From contig NEEC01000021.1 of the NCBI GenBank assembly GCA_002189035.1, forward strand, positions 124,001 to 188,000: a stretch of DNA of 64,000 nucleotides, written 5' to 3'. The position numbers were made by a program, and so were the translations under genes. The notes under the pieces are model-generated. The model worked only from the letters and a program-made list of their open reading frames with translations. It did not search any database and had not been told where the DNA came from. Shown here piece after piece: positions 23,827 through 60,018 of this stretch (positions are counted from its first letter, which is position 1; each line of letters opens with the position of its first letter). This DNA is from Utricularia gibba (taxonomy: Eukaryota > Plantae > Magnoliophyta).

Positions 23827-24804
23827 AAGAATAACACTCCCTCAAGGATCTCTTTCCTTGATATCATCCATTGATTCCAAAATCGAACTTATCCTTCAAA
23901 TTAATATGGTAAACATTGGAATCAGTAATTTGTCATATGAATTGGCAAGTGAATCACTCTTGTTGGAGCATGCTTTCTTTCTTTTTGGAAGATGTGAACT
24001 GTTGTTGTTCTCCCGATTCAAATGAGTGTACGCTTGCTTCATTGGAGGAGTACAGAAATCGTAAAGGGAAGGTGCTAATTTGGCGTTCAAACCTATTTCT
24101 TCACCCATTTCTACGTCTTCATCGTTAATTTCATATGGTAGAATTCCTGAACTTGCATTGAATCTGCTCAACCAAACGCGATAATGTCATCAATTAGTTG
24201 CTTTTGCAATTCCTTTTAAGGTGGGGGTTCTTCACGAATCTCTTTGGCATCATGATTTTTCTAAAATATCACATCTGGAAATTGTTAAGGAGCAATTATG
24301 CTGCTGACAATTTCAGATTCCTAAGAGAGATTCCTACATTCTTCAAAGAGCCAAAAAGAAAAAAACATCCGACTTGATTACCTAAGATGTTAGACTGCCT
24401 AAATTTATCAATATGCCCATTAAGACTTATTAAAAATAAAGAATTCAATGAGATCACAAAGCGGCAGAATTATGTTTTACAACTGAAACCCTTGCTACTT
24501 AAGTTGATAGCCTACCACATCATAAATGCACATATATTAATCCTTTACTTTAAGAAACATGCCAGCATGGACAGAATACTTCATGGAAAACCAACTCACA
24601 ACAAGCTTTAAAGACAAACAAAATTCGTTTTCATCTTCTTTCTCCATGTTGATAAATAGAACTTGTAAACATGTTTAGAATAGAATGTTGAAACCCCAAA
24701 TTATCACTTCAAATATAAAATATGACAGTACCCACAATTCTTTCCACCCACAACTCATCATCAAGTAGGATTATATTTTTGATTGAATCCCATCCTTTTC
24801 CATC

Positions 24805-27320
24805 CAATCCTTTTAAACACATTATCGGGGTGCATGCATATTTGAAAAAAGCCTGAACGTAAGTCAGGTTTGGAAAAGCAAGTAGCACCATATAATTCAT
24901 CAAGTAGATCATCGACCAAGGGAATTGGGAAAAGATTCTTTACCGATATGGAGTTGAGATACCAATAGTCGATGCACATGAGCCAACCACCATCTTTTTT
25001 CGATACAACTAATACGGGAGCAGAAAAGGGGCTTTGGCTTGAGCGGATGAAACTGGAAGTGAGTAATTCGGTTATAATAGATTCGAACTCGGATTTCAAG
25101 TGGTGTGGGATACGATATGGAGGGGACTTCCGTGGTGTGGTATTGGTGAGAAGGGGAATGGAATGTTGGATAGATCGTCTAGGGGGAGTTGGGAAGGGAC
25201 TCGGGAAGACATCATCATAGGTGGAGAGGAGAGATTGGATGGAGGAATGAAGAGTTTTGAGGGATGAGTCGGCGGGAGGTTCGGTAGCAACAAACCAGAT
25301 TTGGGCTACCCAACATGAAGGAGTTTTACGAATATAGGAAGTAGCTGTGTCGGCTGAAATGAGAGATAGAGAGGCAGAGAGTAAAAAGCACTGGAGATGC
25401 ACTAGTTTAGAATCTTGATGAATAGTGAAAATCATCTTAGAGTAATCTTCTCCAGTGGGGCTGTGTTGGTGAAGCCAGTTGCCACCAAGGACCATATCGT
25501 ACTCCCTGTTGAAATTATATGCCCTAAAAGAGAAACAAAAAGGTAAGTTGTGCACAATCCAGCAAAAATCAGTGAATAATTCTTGGTTGATGAGCTGAGT
25601 TTTTCCGCCGGCTGTGCGAATAAAAATGGGGGTGGTAGGTTGGGAGATGAGTCCAAGAGATTTGGGGAAGGAAGAATCGAGGAAACTACTAGTGCTGTCA
25701 TTATCGATGAGGATAAGAAAGTCTCTATTGTTAAAACAGTTGTATAAACGGAATTGGTTGTCTATGGTTTCACCAATGATAGCATGCATTGAAATGGTTT
25801 CCTCTGGGTGGGAGGGAGTGATGTCGGGAGAGGGGGTGGATTTTCTTCTGCTTCTAAGCTGGTTTCATCATCGTCAGAGAGAAGAAAAATTTTTCGAGAA
25901 GAGCAGCGGTGATCTCTAGAGAAAGGGGCACCACACTTGATACAGAGGTATTTTTCAAGGCGTTCACATACCAAGTCATCAGGGATATGAGTCCTTGGTA
26001 ATTTAGGTAGAGGACGGGGGCTTAAGGATTGAGGTGGTTGCAAATCCACCGAAATTTTAGGAAGATATTCTTTATGGGGATGACGAGAATCCATTTCCAT
26101 CTCCTTAGCCATCACAAAGTGAAGAATCTTTGATTTAGTTTTGAGTTGGGCAAAGAGGACGGCTGCCTAAAGATCCTTACGTAGCCCACTGGCAAAGGCT
26201 GCTGGGAAGTTGGTGGCCAAAAAGTGGGGTGAAGGCTAATAATTTGGGAGCGAAGGATTTCATATCGCTCAATGTAATCTGCTAGAGAACCGGTTTGGGT
26301 GATTTTCATGAACTCTGCTAAGACTTGAAGGGGATTAGAATCGTCGAAACGTTTTAGAAAATCAGTTGAAAAGTCCTCCCAACTAGCCAACGGGTTCAAA
26401 GACTTATATCCGTCCAACCAAGCATCGGCTGAGAAGTTATCTCTGATTTATCTCTGTGTTAATGCAAAGAAGTAGGGAAATTGGTAAGGGGGTGGACCGG
26501 TGGGGGGCCTAGAATAGAAGTTGAGGGGGAACCATTGAGGAAAGGGGTTCAATAGGAGGTTTGATGAGGGAAGAGAACTCCCGGTGAATGGTTTCTTTTA
26601 GTGAGAGTGTGACCGCCTGGAGGGAGTCGGTTACATGTTGCTCATGCTATTTACGAGAGAGTTCCAATGATTGAATAAGGGAGAGGAGTTGTTGTGCTTG
26701 CGATTGGTGAGATGCTTCAGACTCCTTAAGGGAGTCATTGAGTGCCTTCTGATTTGCTTCCAAAACTGCTAGGTGGGATTGGTGTGCTTCAAAGGAGTTA
26801 CGCAGATCCAACTGAGAGGTGAGAAGTTGACGTAGCCGGAGGGTAAAAGTATCTGGGTGAGGGATTAAATCAGCATAATCTGATAAATCATCTCGAGGAT
26901 GGGATCCTTCCATTATAATATTTTGGGGAGAGTATTTGTTTCGTTCCCTACAACGGCCTCTTCTTTGCGGACCCAGTGTGCGCTCTAATACCAGATGTGA
27001 AGATACGGGATCGAAGGGAAAGGGGAAGAGGTAAGAAAGAGAAGGGTAGTCAATACTCGATACCCATAGTTTCACAATAGGGGTATAAATACACCCTTTT
27101 GCAATGGCTATTTCCTACAAAATAGCTTAGTCATAGACCAGCTAAACAAAAGGTGGGATAGCATAGACTAACGGTCATCAGGGATTAAGGTGTTGGGTTA
27201 TCTTCATTTTGGGCTTTATCCTTTCTGGACTTATCCTTCTTTGGATTTCTCCTTGAGTAAACCTTGATTGGATCTGCTGGATTATTTGTCAATGAGGGTG
27301 ATCCAATTGGGATCGTGACA
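24805..27320 (-). mobile_element. Chromovirus-type Ty3/gypsy, 5' half (LTR-PBS-gag-protease-partial RT)
   Basis: ~325-bp LTR at 26996-27320 with TG..CA ends and tRNA-iMet PBS tggtattagagc at 26982-26993. gag SWEDFSTDFLKRF..QTGSLADYIERYE and CIKCGAPFSRDHRC; protease LILIDNDSTSSF; RT PPYRIP..SPFSAPVLVVSKKDGGWLMCIDY..DLRSGFFQI, truncated at ~24810. Confidence 0.92.
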
Positions 27321-53709: not shown

Positions 53710-53962
53710 GAAGAAGTTTAACGAATTGAAAGTTGTTGAAACTCATTGGAAGATCAATCGGCCAAAATAACCATGAGGCATGAGCGCCTACAATATTTAT
53801 AAGTTTCTTCCTCTGGACCGAATTTGTAACCTTCATGAGCAGATTCATTTGGTGTGGTTTCCCTGATCAAACTTGAACTTACTGAATTATGAAGAGCACT
53901 AAATAGGGAGCAGCAGAATCCACCAGCTACACCCAACACGTGAAATGGACGTATAAGGTTGG
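53710..53962 (-). pseudogene. psbA: Plastid psbA (D1) internal fragment (NUPT)
   Basis: [50 protein letters not shown], then after a frameshift [14 protein letters not shown], versus D1 [72 protein letters not shown]. Confidence 0.96.
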
Positions 53963-54701
53963 CGTTAATTTGAAATATGCCCCCATCTCTCTCCATCTAA
54001 ATTTGAGAGATGGGTACCCTCAAAAAATTCGTTGCAAATTGGTCATCATTCGCTTATAATTATTTTATAATTTAGTAAGATAAACATTCTTTTGAAAATG
54101 TTGTTGGTACGTGCATATCATTTGAAATCCAAATTAATAACGTTTGGATAACTTATTTAGCATAAACACTGAGTTTTAGATCATGTATACTATGTAATTG
54201 ATTGTTCACTCTTTCGGTTACTTCATTAACCAAAAGATTGCATGTTCATGTTTTATGAGCATAACATATTTGAAAATTTAATATTTTATATCAATCTGTA
54301 TAATATTATGTAGTTAAATAAAAAAATAATGAAATATCAATTTTTTTTTAAATAGCTAACTACTAAAGGCGCGGTTGGTTGTTGTGTTTGGCCTAAACCC
54401 AGGTTTAGTTTATTTGGGTTTAGGTAACCCGGTTTTATGGGTTTAAACGGTGTAAATCATGTTTGGTTGATGGATTTGGATTATTTGTGTTTAAATGAAT
54501 ACACGTTTAGTACGTGGGTATAAAATTTGATTTATGAATAATTTTCAAATAAATTTACCAATATAGTCTTCCCCAACAATAACTACTCCTCTTTATTACC
54601 GTTTGTTTTCCCCTTCGTCCATCGACTTTCACACCCGGTTGTCGCGGTGCTGCCGCGTGACGAGATCTCTCGATTTCACAAGTAATTGAGAGTGAAGAGC
54701 C

Positions 54702-55860
54702 ATGGGTAAGTCCAGATTGTATACTCCCTTCGTTGTGCATAGTTTCTCATTTGAAAGCCGTTGAATTTTGAGTCAATTTTACAATTTACTTGTTGTAAGT
54801 GCTTGGTGTAGGTGCTTTGTTCTTGTTGTTTTCTTTCCTCCAGAATAGAATGCAGGTATGCACAACCCAATCGTGGTGGAAAACTCTCACAAAAGACTTG
54901 TTGCACGCTTTGAAGCAGATAGTGAAAGAAGGCTAGAAAATTGAGAATGGTTTTAGGGGTGGGTATCACTAAGCGTTGGAGAAAGAGTTCTTGAAACTCC
55001 GCCCTAGAACCGACATCCGTCCACACCCGCATATATCTAGCAAGGTGCATACCTGGAAAAAAGACTACTACCTCCTTGTAGATTTTTTATCAAGGTCAGG
55101 CACTAGTTTCAGTGAGCTGACCTACACCGTAGACGCAGACGAGGAGGTTTGGAAGGAGATTGATCAGGTAAGTATGCCTTGTTTTCGTGGTGTTATATCC
55201 GGTGCTTACTGTGTTATTATGTCAGCACGCAGCCAGGTTGCGCGTCCTAAGACACAAAGCATGGCCGTATTACATGGAGTGGCAGGAAATCTTTGGAAAG
55301 GATCGGGCTACAGAAGATAATACGATGAGCTATATAGCCGCGACCAGGAAGAGGAAATTGATGGAAGATGTTGAGGAGAATTTGGAAGCATCTTCGAATT
55401 GCCCTCTGGACCCAGATAGCACTGGATAGGATATGAACTTCTCATATGCTAGCACACCTTGTGACCCTTTTGGTTGTGCTGCGAAGGGTGTGCGCCTTGT
55501 AGGGACTCCGAGTCACACAACAGCACCGACTTCTCGCGGTAGACTGGACGAAGCGGACGGGAACTGAGGGGAATCGATGATGATGCGCAGTTCCTCAAAG
55601 AAATGAAGGAGCTGAACATGCGCACATGCGAAGAGCTTCGTCACTCGGGATTAAAAGTGGTGAGGCAAGCATGGGAGTTGGTGGACAATCAACGTCAGGC
55701 ATGGGAGATCATTAGAGGTATGCCATTACAGTTAACTGCCATCCAATGTTTTACCATAGCAGAGATGATTAGTTCCAACCCTTCGAGGTTGTGCTACTTT
55801 TGGGCTGTACAATGAAAGTAAACAGTCATTGGGTGCAAGATGGTGGAGAATGAGGGTGAC
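54702..55860 (+). pseudogene. Harbinger Myb/SANT-like DNA-binding protein (ORF1)
   Basis: ATG-G|GTAAGT at 54702. LLHALKQIVKEG*KIENGFRGGYH*ALEKEFLKLRPRTDIRPHPHISSKVHTWKKDY, then a GT-AG intron at 55168-55225, then HAARLRVLRHKAWPYYMEWQEIFGKDRATED. Premature stops present. Confidence 0.9.
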
Positions 55861-55871
55861 CAGAACCTCAC

Positions 55872-56419
55872 TGGGTTGTGTAGTGACGTGTACGGCACAT
55901 CATCGATGAGTAGCGTATTAAGACGGTGACATGAGTCAAAAGCTTAAACTTAACCGCGTTGTTCCTATTGTCATGCACCGGATAACCTATGTCCAATGTC
56001 CTGGATCCATCCCATTGGAAGAGGAGCTTGCTGGCGACTGCAGGCCCTCGTAACCATTGGACCACATCGTGCAATTGTTCACTGAAACATGTTGTCAGAA
56101 AAAAGAAAGGTTAGCATCGTGCAGATCCCAATGCCTGCTAACTAGTCAATCTTACCATCCGCTGGAAGACCAGATGGAGACGCCAAAGTGTTCCATGCAA
56201 AACTGTATCAACTCACGTGCACCTGGTCGAAGATACACTACAACCACAACAAATAGTACTGAAACATGCACCAAATATTACACGCATATCAAATACACCA
56301 ACTCAGGATCTTCATTCGTACTCTTACGTTGTCTACGGTGTCGAGGGGTTCCACACCACAGATGCTGTGTCCTAGGGGCATTGATAAAGGGGGGCAAGAC
56401 GTCCTCTAGTAACTTTGTT
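55872..56419 (-). pseudogene. Cargo gene 3' part: NIF/FCP1-homology (HAD-family CTD-phosphatase-like) domain, three exons
   Basis: Exons 56419-56328, 56237-56156 and 56081-55872, joined by GT-AG introns of 90 and 74 nt, splice in frame. Product: TKLLEDVLPPF..RQLYLRPGARELIQFCMEHFGVSIWSSSGCEQLHDVVQWLRGPAVASKLLFQWDGSRTLDIGYPVHDNRNNAVKFKLLTHV//NTLLIDDVPYTSLHNP. This matches the plant NIF-family pattern KRP..EF..FC.E.FEVGIWSS..KLLF.WD...GY..LENR..P..FK.L..NT..IDD.PYKAL.NP. Confidence 0.85.
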
Positions 56420-56554
56420 CTGCAAGAGAACAAATTCACAAACCCCCTTCTTGCATGTTTTGGCAATACCTCAATGCCGACAACGACAACAACAAAGCAC
56501 ATGAGTACTATTGCAGACGATGTTAACATATTCGAAGTAATTTTTTGTGACTAC

Positions 56555-57053
56555 CTGATGGGTGTCAAACGTTCTCTGACACTGTCAATGTTGTTGCCCA
56601 TTCTGGAGCGGTGGGTGGGCATACCCATACAAAACTAGTCTCCCAATCATCATATGCGCTTCTAACGTCTGTAACCAGAACCACGCCAGATTTTCCATGA
56701 AGCGAGTAGTGCGGACTCCCCTTATGTTGCACACTAACATAAACCTCAAAGAAAATTCACATTTCCAGGGGGTATATCCTCCTCTTCATAGATCTACAGA
56801 AATGCAAGTACGTGCACCACATAATGTGGTGTGAGGTGGGAGAGTGGGATCTAGAGTGCGGCAAGTATCTGCACCAAGAAAAGGGGCGGAGCAGTCGCAA
56901 TCCACACTGAAAGTGCTGGGTGCTGACGGCAAATCCCGATGCTCCAACTCTAGGCGACGGTTCGGCGTCGGACGTTTTGCCTGGTTGTTTATCCCACATC
57001 ACATAACCGTCGGGAATTGAGAAGCGGGCAGGTAGTTTCTCACACGTCAACAT
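56555..57053 (-). pseudogene. Cargo gene 5' part: probable Transposase_28-like (gypsy extra-ORF type) domain
   Basis: With two frameshifts: RFSIPDGY..FQCGLRL/PPLFLVQILAAL*IPLSHLTPHYVVHVLAFL*IYEEEDIPP/LEM*IFFEV..HYSLHGKSGVVLVTDVRSAYDDWETSFVWV. This resembles the pattern F..GLRLP.HPF..LL....P.QL.PN...F...W...FFFV. It ends at a GT donor at 56554. Confidence 0.55.
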
Positions 57054-57364
57054 CTACGAAAAACAACAGACGTCTTACTCGACGAACACAATGAAGAATT
57101 TGAAATGCTGAAGGCAAAGGTTCCTATCGTCGCAACGCTGTTCTGATGAGGTTTTCAATGATTTTATTGTCGCGGTGCTGCTGTGCGTTTGCAGAATTAA
57201 TGAAGTTGTTTTGGAAAGTGTTATATGTCAGGCACCTTTATTATGCACAGGGTGGGTATTAATAGCGGTGGGCAGTTGTCAACCGCCCAACGCATTTAAT
57301 ACTTGATAACTGCAGTATTTTATAGCAATTTTTTTTTGAAACTCAGAGCACCTGATTAGGCGGC

Positions 57365-57722
57365 ACGTGGTGCTATGTTGTGCGTAGCGTAGCACAGGCA
57401 TTTAGAAGCATTGTATATTACGGATCGCGGTGTTTGGTCAAATGGAGTATTATTGTACTACCAATCACCCTCGCTAATATGCACCAGCTTCACACTCATC
57501 TACTTCACATATTTTGACAGCACCGGATACGATGAAACACGCGGTGCTGCGCTGTGCACAGCGTAGCCTAGGCGTTTTGAAGCACCAGATATTACGGATC
57601 ACGGTGTTTGGTCAAATGGCATATTGGTGTACTACCAAATACCCTCACTACTACGCACCAACTTCACACTCATCTTCATCATAAATTTTGACAGCATCGG
57701 ATACGATGAAACATGCGGTGCT
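57365..57722. repeat. Tandem duplication, 2 x 174 bp
   Basis: ttacggatc.cggtgtttggtcaaatgg at 57418 and 57592; gatgaaaca.gcggtgct at 57531 and 57705 (offset 174 for both). Confidence 0.9.
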
Positions 57723-58039
57723 ACTAAAAACTTTGGTGTCGTACAAGCCTCCGCAGCACCTCGTCGGGAGATCGCGGTGCTGGCTCCAATGATCCACCAT
57801 GTGGTACCATGTTACCCTATGGTAACACATGACACTACGGTTCAATCTCAACACCATTTGCAGCAACCACCAAATACGATGCATACAGGTGTTCAAGTTG
57901 GAGTATCAACTGGAGCTTAACTTGTTATGACTTTGCAATGCAAACAGTTGTGCTTAACAAATCCAGTACAATCGACATGATAGGTTCTGAACGGGAATTT
58001 AGTAAAACAACTAGCTTGACAATGTCTAAAGCAGTGCTA

Positions 58040-59370
58040 CATTAGCGGCGTCTGTGGGATGCTAGCCACTCGGTGTACATCACCTCAGCTTGCTTGTCAC
58101 GTCACCTATTCCATGCGTGATTTCCTACGGCAAATGTCGTTACGTCTTGTATATCACTCGTGTCCCCACCTTCATCCTGGAAGTCCAATGGGACCTGATC
58201 CTCCAGGGGATCAACCACCATCTCCTTTTGAATGAAGTTATGGAGCAAAGCACATGTCAATACAATGCAATTCAGTGTGTCTACCGAATAGTAGCTAGCC
58301 ATCCGTAGTATACCCCACCACATCTTCATCAAGCCCCAAGCTCGTTCGATCACATTTCTGGCTGATGCATGCCGGATGTTGAATAGCTCCTTCGCATTCT
58401 GGAGGTACTCCATTTCCCTGTCTCCACTCCTTCAAGTGATAACGGACTCCACGGTATGGTGCCAAAAAGCCCTCCCTATTGGCATATCCATTTTCACATA
58501 GGTAATATGTTCATGTGTCATCACGTATACATGGTGCATAAAATCATTGGAATCACATGCGCAAAGGCTAAACAAGTGAAATACCTGGGCATACACGGAA
58601 GCCGTCGGATCGTGATAGTGCATCGTTTAGCACCCGACTATCTGCAGCAGACCTCTCCCACCCAGCAAGCAAATATATAAATTTCATTTGTTCATCACAT
58701 ACACCCAACACGTTGGTGGATATCACACCCTTTTGATTTATGTACCTTGCAGCGTCACATATCTTAACTCGTATACCAATGTATGTACCATCTATGGCCC
58801 CGACACAACCCTGCAAATGCATAATCAATTTTAGATACATTCTTAAAAATAAGTACGAAAGATGTGTCAACCTAGAAGTGTTTGAACTTTTCTTCGGATG
58901 CACGTTCTCCAGCAGCTACTGGGGTCTCTAAGAGTACCTCATGAAGGCAAAGCACCGCATGCAACACCTTTTGGAAGCACCGAGACTGTCTCAGTGCTCC
59001 TCCCGTAGACATGCTTCTACACCCGCATTCTTTTATGGTGACCTAATATTCCTAAAAACATGCAAATCATCTTCGGAACCGTTACATATTTTCCAACCTT
59101 TAAACTAGAACGATTTTCTAATAGGCTACATAAAATACCCAACGCATCTCGGCTAATTCTCAAGTTCTCAATGAATGCGCTGTTCACATCACTCACCAAC
59201 CTATTAATATACTCAATTTGTCTAGGAATCTTGTGTGTAAGTGAATACCTGCGTCTCACCCTATATCCCCTACGCTATTTTTTCTAATGTAAGTATACTA
59301 ACACATTCATCTGCATCAAGTATTTGGTTAAAACTGCCGCATCCGAACTCAAGATGACATGACCCTCCAT
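58040..59370 (-). pseudogene. Harbinger DDE transposase (DDE_Tnp_4 type), two introns
   Basis: N-terminal ENLRISRDALGILCSLL..VTVPKMICMFLGILGHHK. Exon 58810-58585 gives GCVGAIDGTYI..NVLGVCD..FIYLLAGWERSAADSRVL. The last exon gives YYLCENGYANREGFLAPYRGVRYHL../ELFNIRHASARNVIERAWGLMK..LHNF. The second catalytic Asp reads Glu, and there are frameshifts and stops. Confidence 0.95.
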
Positions 59371-60018
59371 GAAAAAATCCATATCCTCTCAACAGTAGCA
59401 AAAATCGAGCAAAATAAATCCACACACACAGCACAATGGATTTAGACATTGGAAAATCACAGATAAAAACCCACTATGCGGTGCTGCTGTGGTTGGCCTT
59501 ATGTAGTGCTACCATGGACCAACCCACCAAGAATAGAAAGCACACTTACCGAAAGACCCACCCTTTTTGCACCCAAAGAACACCCGACGCCGTCGGCAAA
59601 TCACGAACAATGTCTGGTTTGTAGATATGCATTCAAATGTGGTTCACACGAGGATAAAATTGGAAGCGACGAGTCTTGTTTAGCTAAACCGACCCCCCTC
59701 CCATGGGTTTAGCCAAACCCAGCTTGGTAGGTTCCTGCCGGTTTATGGTCAACAGGCAGGTTTATTTTTACAACCTAAAACCCACGAACCAAATGTGGGT
59801 TTATATCTAAACCTACGCCGCAACCCACCTAAACCCACCAACCAAACGTGCCCTAAGTGAAAGATTACCAATTTGCGAAGGTACCCAGCAGCGGTAAGAC
59901 ATAGCATGCAAGCATTATCTGGAATGCTTGGGTGTAAGGCGTTTGTAAGGCGAAGGTTGGCTTTTAAATATAGTATTTACTTAATCTCATAATCCCTTAT
60001 TTGCTATAACTTGTAAAG

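Follow-up and report, generated by a model that had tools for sequence, protein, structure and literature searches.

The window analysed here, a stretch of 64,000 nucleotides, contains at 54367-59853 a PIF/Harbinger element of 5,487 bp. It is probably an old, dead copy of a high-copy family whose founder carried a third gene with a Transposase_28 (TRP28)-like and a NIF-like part. PIF/Harbinger elements are textbook two-gene transposons, which encode a Myb/SANT-like ORF1 and a DDE transposase. The founder would have held the third gene in addition to these two. This gene would lie on the same strand as the transposase gene and downstream of it, tail to tail with the Myb gene, and would join a TRP28-like N-terminal part to an intron-containing HAD domain of the FCP1/NIF type. 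Because introns are retained, the captured material was presumably host genomic DNA (transduplication) and not a processed transcript.

To judge from the reading frames, all three genes are damaged in the window copy and nothing at the locus should be able to work. This is explained by the frameshift and truncation of the NIF-like part and its lack of DxDxT, the stops in the TRP28-like part, the lesions in the transposase gene and the truncation of the Myb gene. The locus is a fossil which displays the gene content of its family; the window copy contributes anatomy only, namely the positions of exons and introns and the mode of gene decay.

Termini and transposition genes

The element is flanked on both sides by TAA, read directly from the sequence at 54364-54366 and 59854-59856. 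The left terminal inverted repeat (54367-54391, plus strand) begins with AGGCGCGGTTGGTTG; the right one (59829-59853, minus strand) begins with GGGCACGTTTGGTTGG in reverse complement and pairs with the left in an end-to-end comparison. A first reading of this DNA, made from the sequence only, had described intact terminal inverted repeats with a TAA target-site duplication. The duplication is there on both sides, but the repeats, while recognisable, are imperfect: left and reverse-complemented right agree at 12 of 15, 15 of 20 and 19 of 25 positions. A 3-bp TAA duplication with short terminal inverted repeats is what is found in PIF/Harbinger elements. The left boundary can also be seen in other copies of the element, represented by short contigs from sequencing runs of the same species that were aligned to it. 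Here the contigs lose their match, and their loose ends before 54368 agree with one another only at 0.52; this is expected, since different copies have different flanks.

The gene for a DDE transposase of PIF/Harbinger type lies at 58057-59259 on the minus strand. It matches Pfam DDE_Tnp_4 with E 1e-8 and 35.4 bits, over the cut-off of 24.8, and Plant_tran with E 5e-5; tblastn with plant homologues places it in the same class. The alignments of these homologues switch frame at 58415-58419 and also read through a stop, in keeping with a frameshift near 58403-58415 and a stop codon at 58102-58104. The family majority has one base fewer at 58403, and at 58102 it has a C which turns the stop into Trp; consequently, both lesions are private to the window copy or to a minority of copies.

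A piece of the transposase found six homologous proteins, with plant Harbinger transposases at 64% identity or less. The only long contig among the six is from Camellia sinensis, to whose Harbinger transposase the window transposase is up to 64% identical. On this contig, two equally oriented Harbinger copies are separated by about 10 kb (contig positions 1-1908 and 9360-12002), and a third gene is absent. In both copies the transposase gene, the N-terminal part of which is annotated as DUF8040, is followed by a Myb_DNA-bind_3 gene. In contrast to this adjacent tandem of Myb and transposase genes, the two genes of the window element are convergent and the third gene stands between them.

The Myb/SANT-like gene (ORF1 type) is found at 54898-55798 on the plus strand. 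Its match to Pfam Myb_DNA-bind_3 (E 7.9e-4, 20.8 bits) does not reach the cut-off of 23.6, and a homologous-protein search with the ORF gave no match. By tblastx it matches the Myb gene beside the C. sinensis Harbinger transposase with E 1e-15. The profile match, just below threshold, and the tblastx match together identify the second gene expected in a PIF/Harbinger element. Its 3' end has been lost to a deletion at 55798/55799; past 55799, the contigs of other copies continue with different letters.

With a DDE_Tnp_4 transposase, a Myb_DNA-bind_3-like ORF and TAA on both sides, the element is what the sequence-only reading took it for, a PIF/Harbinger transposon with Myb and transposase genes around an extra gene. 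It resembles other plant PIF/Harbinger elements in the TAA duplication, in terminal repeats of the GGGC..GTTTGGTT type, in the DDE_Tnp_4/Plant_tran transposase and in the Myb_DNA-bind_3-like second gene. It differs from these two-gene elements in the third, chimeric gene between the Myb and transposase genes. Between the 3' end of the transposase gene and the TRP28-like part of the third gene, a 174-nt unit is repeated in tandem about 2.5 times (57364-57791). The units of this array are 83% identical by self-BLAST; one unit is skipped in some other copies (joint 57363-57538).

Exon structure of the NIF-like part

Three minus-strand exons belong to the NIF-like part. Exon A (56328-56419, containing ..KLLEDVLPPFINAPRTQH..) covers the putative motif-I region without DxDxT, and lies between an acceptor ..CTCTTGCAG at 56420-56421 and a GTAAGA donor at 56327. 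Exon B (56156-56258, containing ..VYLRPGARELIQFCMEHFGVSIWSS..) is the sole part with a direct family match, to Pfam NIF. Exon C (55872-56081) has a TTTCAG acceptor at 56082-56087, a GTGAG donor at 55871 and a net 34-nt deletion inside. The A-B and B-C joins are in frame across GT-AG introns, with GTAAGA donors and TTTCAG-type acceptors. The spliced product reads ..KLLEDVLPPFINAPRTQH..RRQLLFVVVVVYLRPGARELIQFCMEHFGVSIWSS..CEQLHDVVQWL..KLLFQWD..FKLLTHV. The three exons, their peptides and both in-frame GT-AG joins had been proposed earlier, and all are present. At 56411 in exon A the majority letter differs from that of the window copy, giving S in place of L.

The continuation NTLLIDDVPY..LHNP had also been read as in frame with the rest of the product. 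It is in a different frame from FKLL: in the window copy, the frame of exon C shifts between ..FKLLTHV and NTLLIDDVPYTSLHNP. A closer comparison with the contigs over 55790-56270 places the site at 55924-55928, where other copies have 39 letters and the window copy has 5, so that what had looked like a junction is a net 34-nt deletion with a frameshift. With the letters of other copies, exon C becomes a single frame reading ..FKLLTHVWGTNTEFKGKYHHLNTLLIDDVPYTSLHNP. Six variants of the missing 11-13 codons are found, and all of them are open in the frame of the gene. A third intron leading from FKLL to NTLLIDD was considered and rejected, as there is no AG between the two and other copies carry extra letters at this place.

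The same reading had let the domain stop at NP. In fact NP precedes the GTGAG donor at 55871, and the next exon starts at 55804. In other copies this last exon reads PKNAIFPTTFKY, in phase with ..LHNP. In the window copy it is a stub at 55798-55804 (minus strand), preceded by the acceptor ..TTTCATTGTACAG (..TGTACAG), which ends at 55805; the deletion at 55798/55799 has removed the exon after 7 nt. At this point contigs arriving from either side continue with unlike letters, and depth falls. Since the Myb gene is convergent with the third gene, the same deletion takes away its 3' end as well.

An antisense ORF of 193 aa (56057-56638) lies over the exons, as had been noted. It was rejected as a gene; it has no Pfam family match.

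Resemblance to NIF phosphatases

On their sequence, the exons can be called NIF-like with moderate confidence, and they are not filed here as a member of PF03031. The curated cut-off of this Pfam family is 21.8 bits. Exon B matches NIF with E 0.008 and 16.3 bits over model positions 38-62, and matches no other Pfam family. Spliced B and C together match with E 0.001 and 19.2 bits over model positions 37-76; this alignment crosses the splice junction, and residues 29-40 of the spliced product carry it on to model position 76. The matching stretch thus consists of exon B and about 12 residues of exon C. When exon B is given the family-majority letters, it also reaches E 0.001 and 19.2 bits. A higher score for the majority than for the window copy is expected if the window copy has decayed from a NIF-like ancestor. 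The earlier assignment to NIF is upheld insofar as NIF is the sole family found for exon B, but at 16.3-19.2 bits every profile score stays below 21.8.

A protein-language-model search (Atlas) agrees with the profile. The top match of exon B is a NIF cluster, with a score of 0.89 and 189 of 256 features shared; 61 of the 100 matches are NIF and the remainder are HAD phosphatases. Exon A has no family match in Pfam or NCBIfam, and the C-terminal exons have no NIF match in these two libraries even with the letters of other copies filled in. For exon C, phmmer against 1.84 billion representatives gives just two spurious repeat proteins, and Atlas gives no match. PDB sequence searches with four pieces find no phosphatase. 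A homologous-protein search with exon B gives no match, under a length filter which left out full-length relatives of short exon pieces.

In FCP1/SCP-type NIF phosphatases of the HAD superfamily, a collinear counterpart can be found for the RPG..FL..hydrophobic-WSS segment (model positions 37-76). Downstream of it come three segments ordered like HAD motifs II, III and IV: one that contains K, then LLIDD.PY, then NP..N.IFP; we take the last two segments to fit the order of C-terminal HAD/NIF motifs. The window copy differs from these phosphatases in its scores below the cut-off, in the missing DxDxT and in a domain that is interrupted and truncated. This domain is joined to a TRP28-like part, and not to BRCT, ubiquitin-like or other host partners. 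The position in exon A that is collinear with the first motif, DxDx(T/V), reads LLEDVLPP, and the absence of DxDxT had been correctly noted from the EDVLPP of this region. Plant FCP1-like proteins include a subgroup with a DxN first motif. There is no complete collinear NIF domain in one frame, owing to the frameshift at 55924-55928 and the truncation at 55798. The sequence-only reading had suggested that the copy is catalytically dead or a passive capture; it is indeed broken and reads EDVLPP, and it is not a clean spliced gene.

The Transposase_28-like part

The upstream part of the third gene, at 56555-57053 on the minus strand, is TRP28-like and is spread over two frames with stops. Both GLRL..RPF and ..LSHLTP.. 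can be read in these frames, together with a segment ..W.TSFVWV... Atlas gives PF04195 in 76 of 100 named matches at a score of only 0.69, which is a lead only. No PF04195 profile match is found in Pfam with stop-free pieces of 56555-57227 at E up to 10. The stop TGA at 56565-56567 is private to the window copy, as the family majority has GGA.

The published occurrences of TRP28 are in Retand LTR retrotransposons, in antisense ORFs that lie beside tandem-repeat arrays (PMC11963269). DNA binding is predicted for it, almost all active Retand elements have kept it, and it is stated to have no similarity to other known transposable elements (PMC11963269). The window part resembles the Retand ORFs in its PF04195-type Atlas matches and in the GLRL..P and LTP motifs. 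In the POL-3'LTR regions of Retand a tandem array adjoins TRP28, and in the window element the 174-nt array adjoins the TRP28-like part. The window part differs from its Retand counterparts in lying within a DNA transposon, in being apparently fused to a phosphatase-like domain, and in having no Pfam match.

Other copies and decay of the window copy

Between 1,170 and 3,665 contigs per DNA run align to the element at 80-99% identity, the NIF-like part included. Since these contigs together span the element from end to end at this identity, the extra gene is family-wide, with the linkage of the three genes in other copies read from overlapping short contigs only. A one-off capture, present in this copy alone and nearly identical to one host gene, had been named as the outcome that would speak against a family-encoded function. 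The contigs show otherwise; the capture is old and family-wide.

Differences between the contigs and the window element are dominated by C>T and G>A. Compared with the family majority, the exons of the window copy have 5 synonymous and 11 non-synonymous changes, at the same density as the introns; after insertion, the window copy thus appears to have decayed neutrally. In the largest run, X12, the third gene has about 20-60% of the depth seen on the Myb and transposase genes. It may be absent from some family members, or it may simply be more diverged.

Contig depth over exon B is 3-5 times that of the neighbouring sequence in all runs. At four sites in exon B (56188, 56190, 56219 and 56232), run X13 has G>A in almost all of its depth (about 2,900-4,800), and runs X12 and X8 have almost none. 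Run X13 is dominated either by a very high-copy subfamily or by a different accession.

None of the RNA runs listed contains the stretch. An RNA-labelled run has two contigs on the element at less than 90% identity, one at 55039-55743 in the Myb gene and one at 58648-58733 in the transposase gene. The Myb contig is 716 nt long, about 87% identical and unspliced; no contig of this run lies on the third gene. The two contigs could come from transcription of another family member or from DNA carry-over.

Comparison with known gene-carrying transposons

Among Mutator-like elements, those with VANC or Ulp1 are known to encode a transposase and to carry a captured enzyme domain as well (PMC13317346). 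The KI-MULEs and VANDAL elements, which carry VANC and transduplicated Ulp1, resemble the family described here in being a transposase family with an extra gene, a captured host enzyme domain and many copies (PMC13317346). In those elements a Mutator transposon carries a Ulp1 protease, whereas here a Harbinger transposon carries an FCP1/NIF-like HAD domain. Anti-silencing activity has been demonstrated for VANC; the gene in the window copy, in contrast, is broken, and any role of that kind would be hypothetical.

Pack-PIF elements are PIF-type elements which hold captured host DNA (PMC8903248). They belong to the Pack-TYPE transposons and have PIF-type termini around host-derived, intron-containing coding DNA, as does the window element (PMC8903248). 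Pack-TYPE elements are short, non-autonomous and without transposase genes, and usually hold gene fragments, whereas the window family has its cargo plus both transposition genes. The window element is therefore not a Pack-PIF: both transposition genes are inside it, although broken in this copy.

At the level of the family, this is an uncommon form of gene capture by a transposon. In the literature searched, no paper links Harbinger with NIF, FCP1, NLI-interacting factor or Transposase_28 in a transposon context. Few DNA transposons carry accessory genes, the known examples being Mutator-like elements with VANC and Ulp1, and a three-gene Harbinger family would add to them. Its third gene would unite TRP28, otherwise published only from Retand retrotransposons, with an FCP1/NIF-like domain. 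If active copies exist, the unexplained TRP28 domain would gain a testable partner.

Alternative explanations

A sceptical explanation denies any homology to phosphatases: a short hydrophobic-RPG segment of non-coding transposon DNA would have matched NIF by chance. In its favour, all scores stay below the Pfam cut-off and the remaining exons have no match in any library. Coincidence is nevertheless highly improbable: NIF is the only Pfam match, in a family that had been predicted beforehand from the sequence, and its score climbs both with the intron taken out and with the majority letters of the family put in. An independent feature search ranks NIF clusters first and otherwise finds the HAD phosphatase superfamily. 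The phases of the exons, and the way other copies continue them in frame, suit a coding gene. If the block is coding, it could still have come from another mobile element, either a Retand-type accessory region or a Mutator-like element with the same gene, and have landed in one Harbinger copy that then multiplied. The published place of TRP28, in Retand antisense ORFs beside tandem arrays (PMC11963269), fits such an origin, as do the 174-nt array directly upstream of the TRP28-like part and a depth of the block below that of the two core genes. On the other hand, the block is unbounded by inverted or direct repeats, Pfam finds no LTR, gag or pol remnants inside the element, and the block sits neatly between the two genes on the strand of the transposase; an origin of this kind is very doubtful. 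A nested element inside the Harbinger is likewise unlikely, since no termini of its own delimit the third-gene block; a repeat search found no internal termini and no inverted or direct repeats that bound it.

The preferred explanation remains a dead copy of a family whose founder carried a third gene, presumably acquired by transduplication of host DNA. It is unlikely, on present evidence, that the family-level gene is a working or recently working accessory protein of which the window copy is just a dead member. The TRP28-like module would then act as a DNA-binding tether for a catalytically altered FCP1/NIF-like domain, which would bind or dephosphorylate RNA polymerase II CTD-type substrates and so promote transcription of the element or counter its silencing, much as the sequence-only reading had suggested it might. 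This is consistent with the retention of the block in copies that are 5-20% apart, with the preservation of splice sites and phases, with the six open variants of the 11-13 missing codons, and with the coverage of exon B, the highest of the region and 3-5 times that of the adjacent sequence, as would suit a conserved stretch. For TRP28 itself DNA binding is predicted, and nearly all active Retand elements retain it (PMC11963269), and there is precedent for captured domains in VANC and in Ulp1-carrying KI-MULEs (PMC13317346). Against it, no listed RNA run contains the stretch and the RNA-run contigs lie only on the Myb and transposase genes at less than 90% identity; moreover, the nearest relative with an annotation, that of Camellia, lacks a third gene, and motif I is missing in the window copy. 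A more specific proposal is quite improbable: that younger members encode an intact TRP28-NIF fusion which works for the transposon, its DxN-type, substrate-trapping or weakly active domain altering RNA polymerase II phosphorylation or silencing. If true, this would be the first such accessory gene in PIF/Harbinger and the first functional context for TRP28 outside retrotransposons.

Surroundings of the element

The insertion is surrounded by a 23-nt inverted repeat (54034-54056 and 59854-59876) with 20 of 23 positions in agreement. The right TAA forms the first three letters of its right arm, and 310 bp separate its left arm from the left end of the element. A small MITE-like element may have received the Harbinger at its inner edge.

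Plastid-like sequences occur at two places in the window. A decayed psbA-like fragment (53757-53996, minus strand), which matches Pfam Photo_RC with E 1.4e-7, lies some hundred bases to the left of the Harbinger and is probably plastid DNA inserted in the nuclear genome. At 8044-8111 on the minus strand, a match to the Rfam Plastid-clpP 5'UTR RNA exceeds the gathering score with 61.7 bits, and is another hint of plastid-derived DNA in a window rich in transposons. Retrotransposon remnants are found at 2846-3292 on the plus strand, with an integrase-core ORF (rve, E 7e-6), and at 24761-25789 on the minus strand, where a 342-aa ORF has no Pfam match and a protease/RT-like look.
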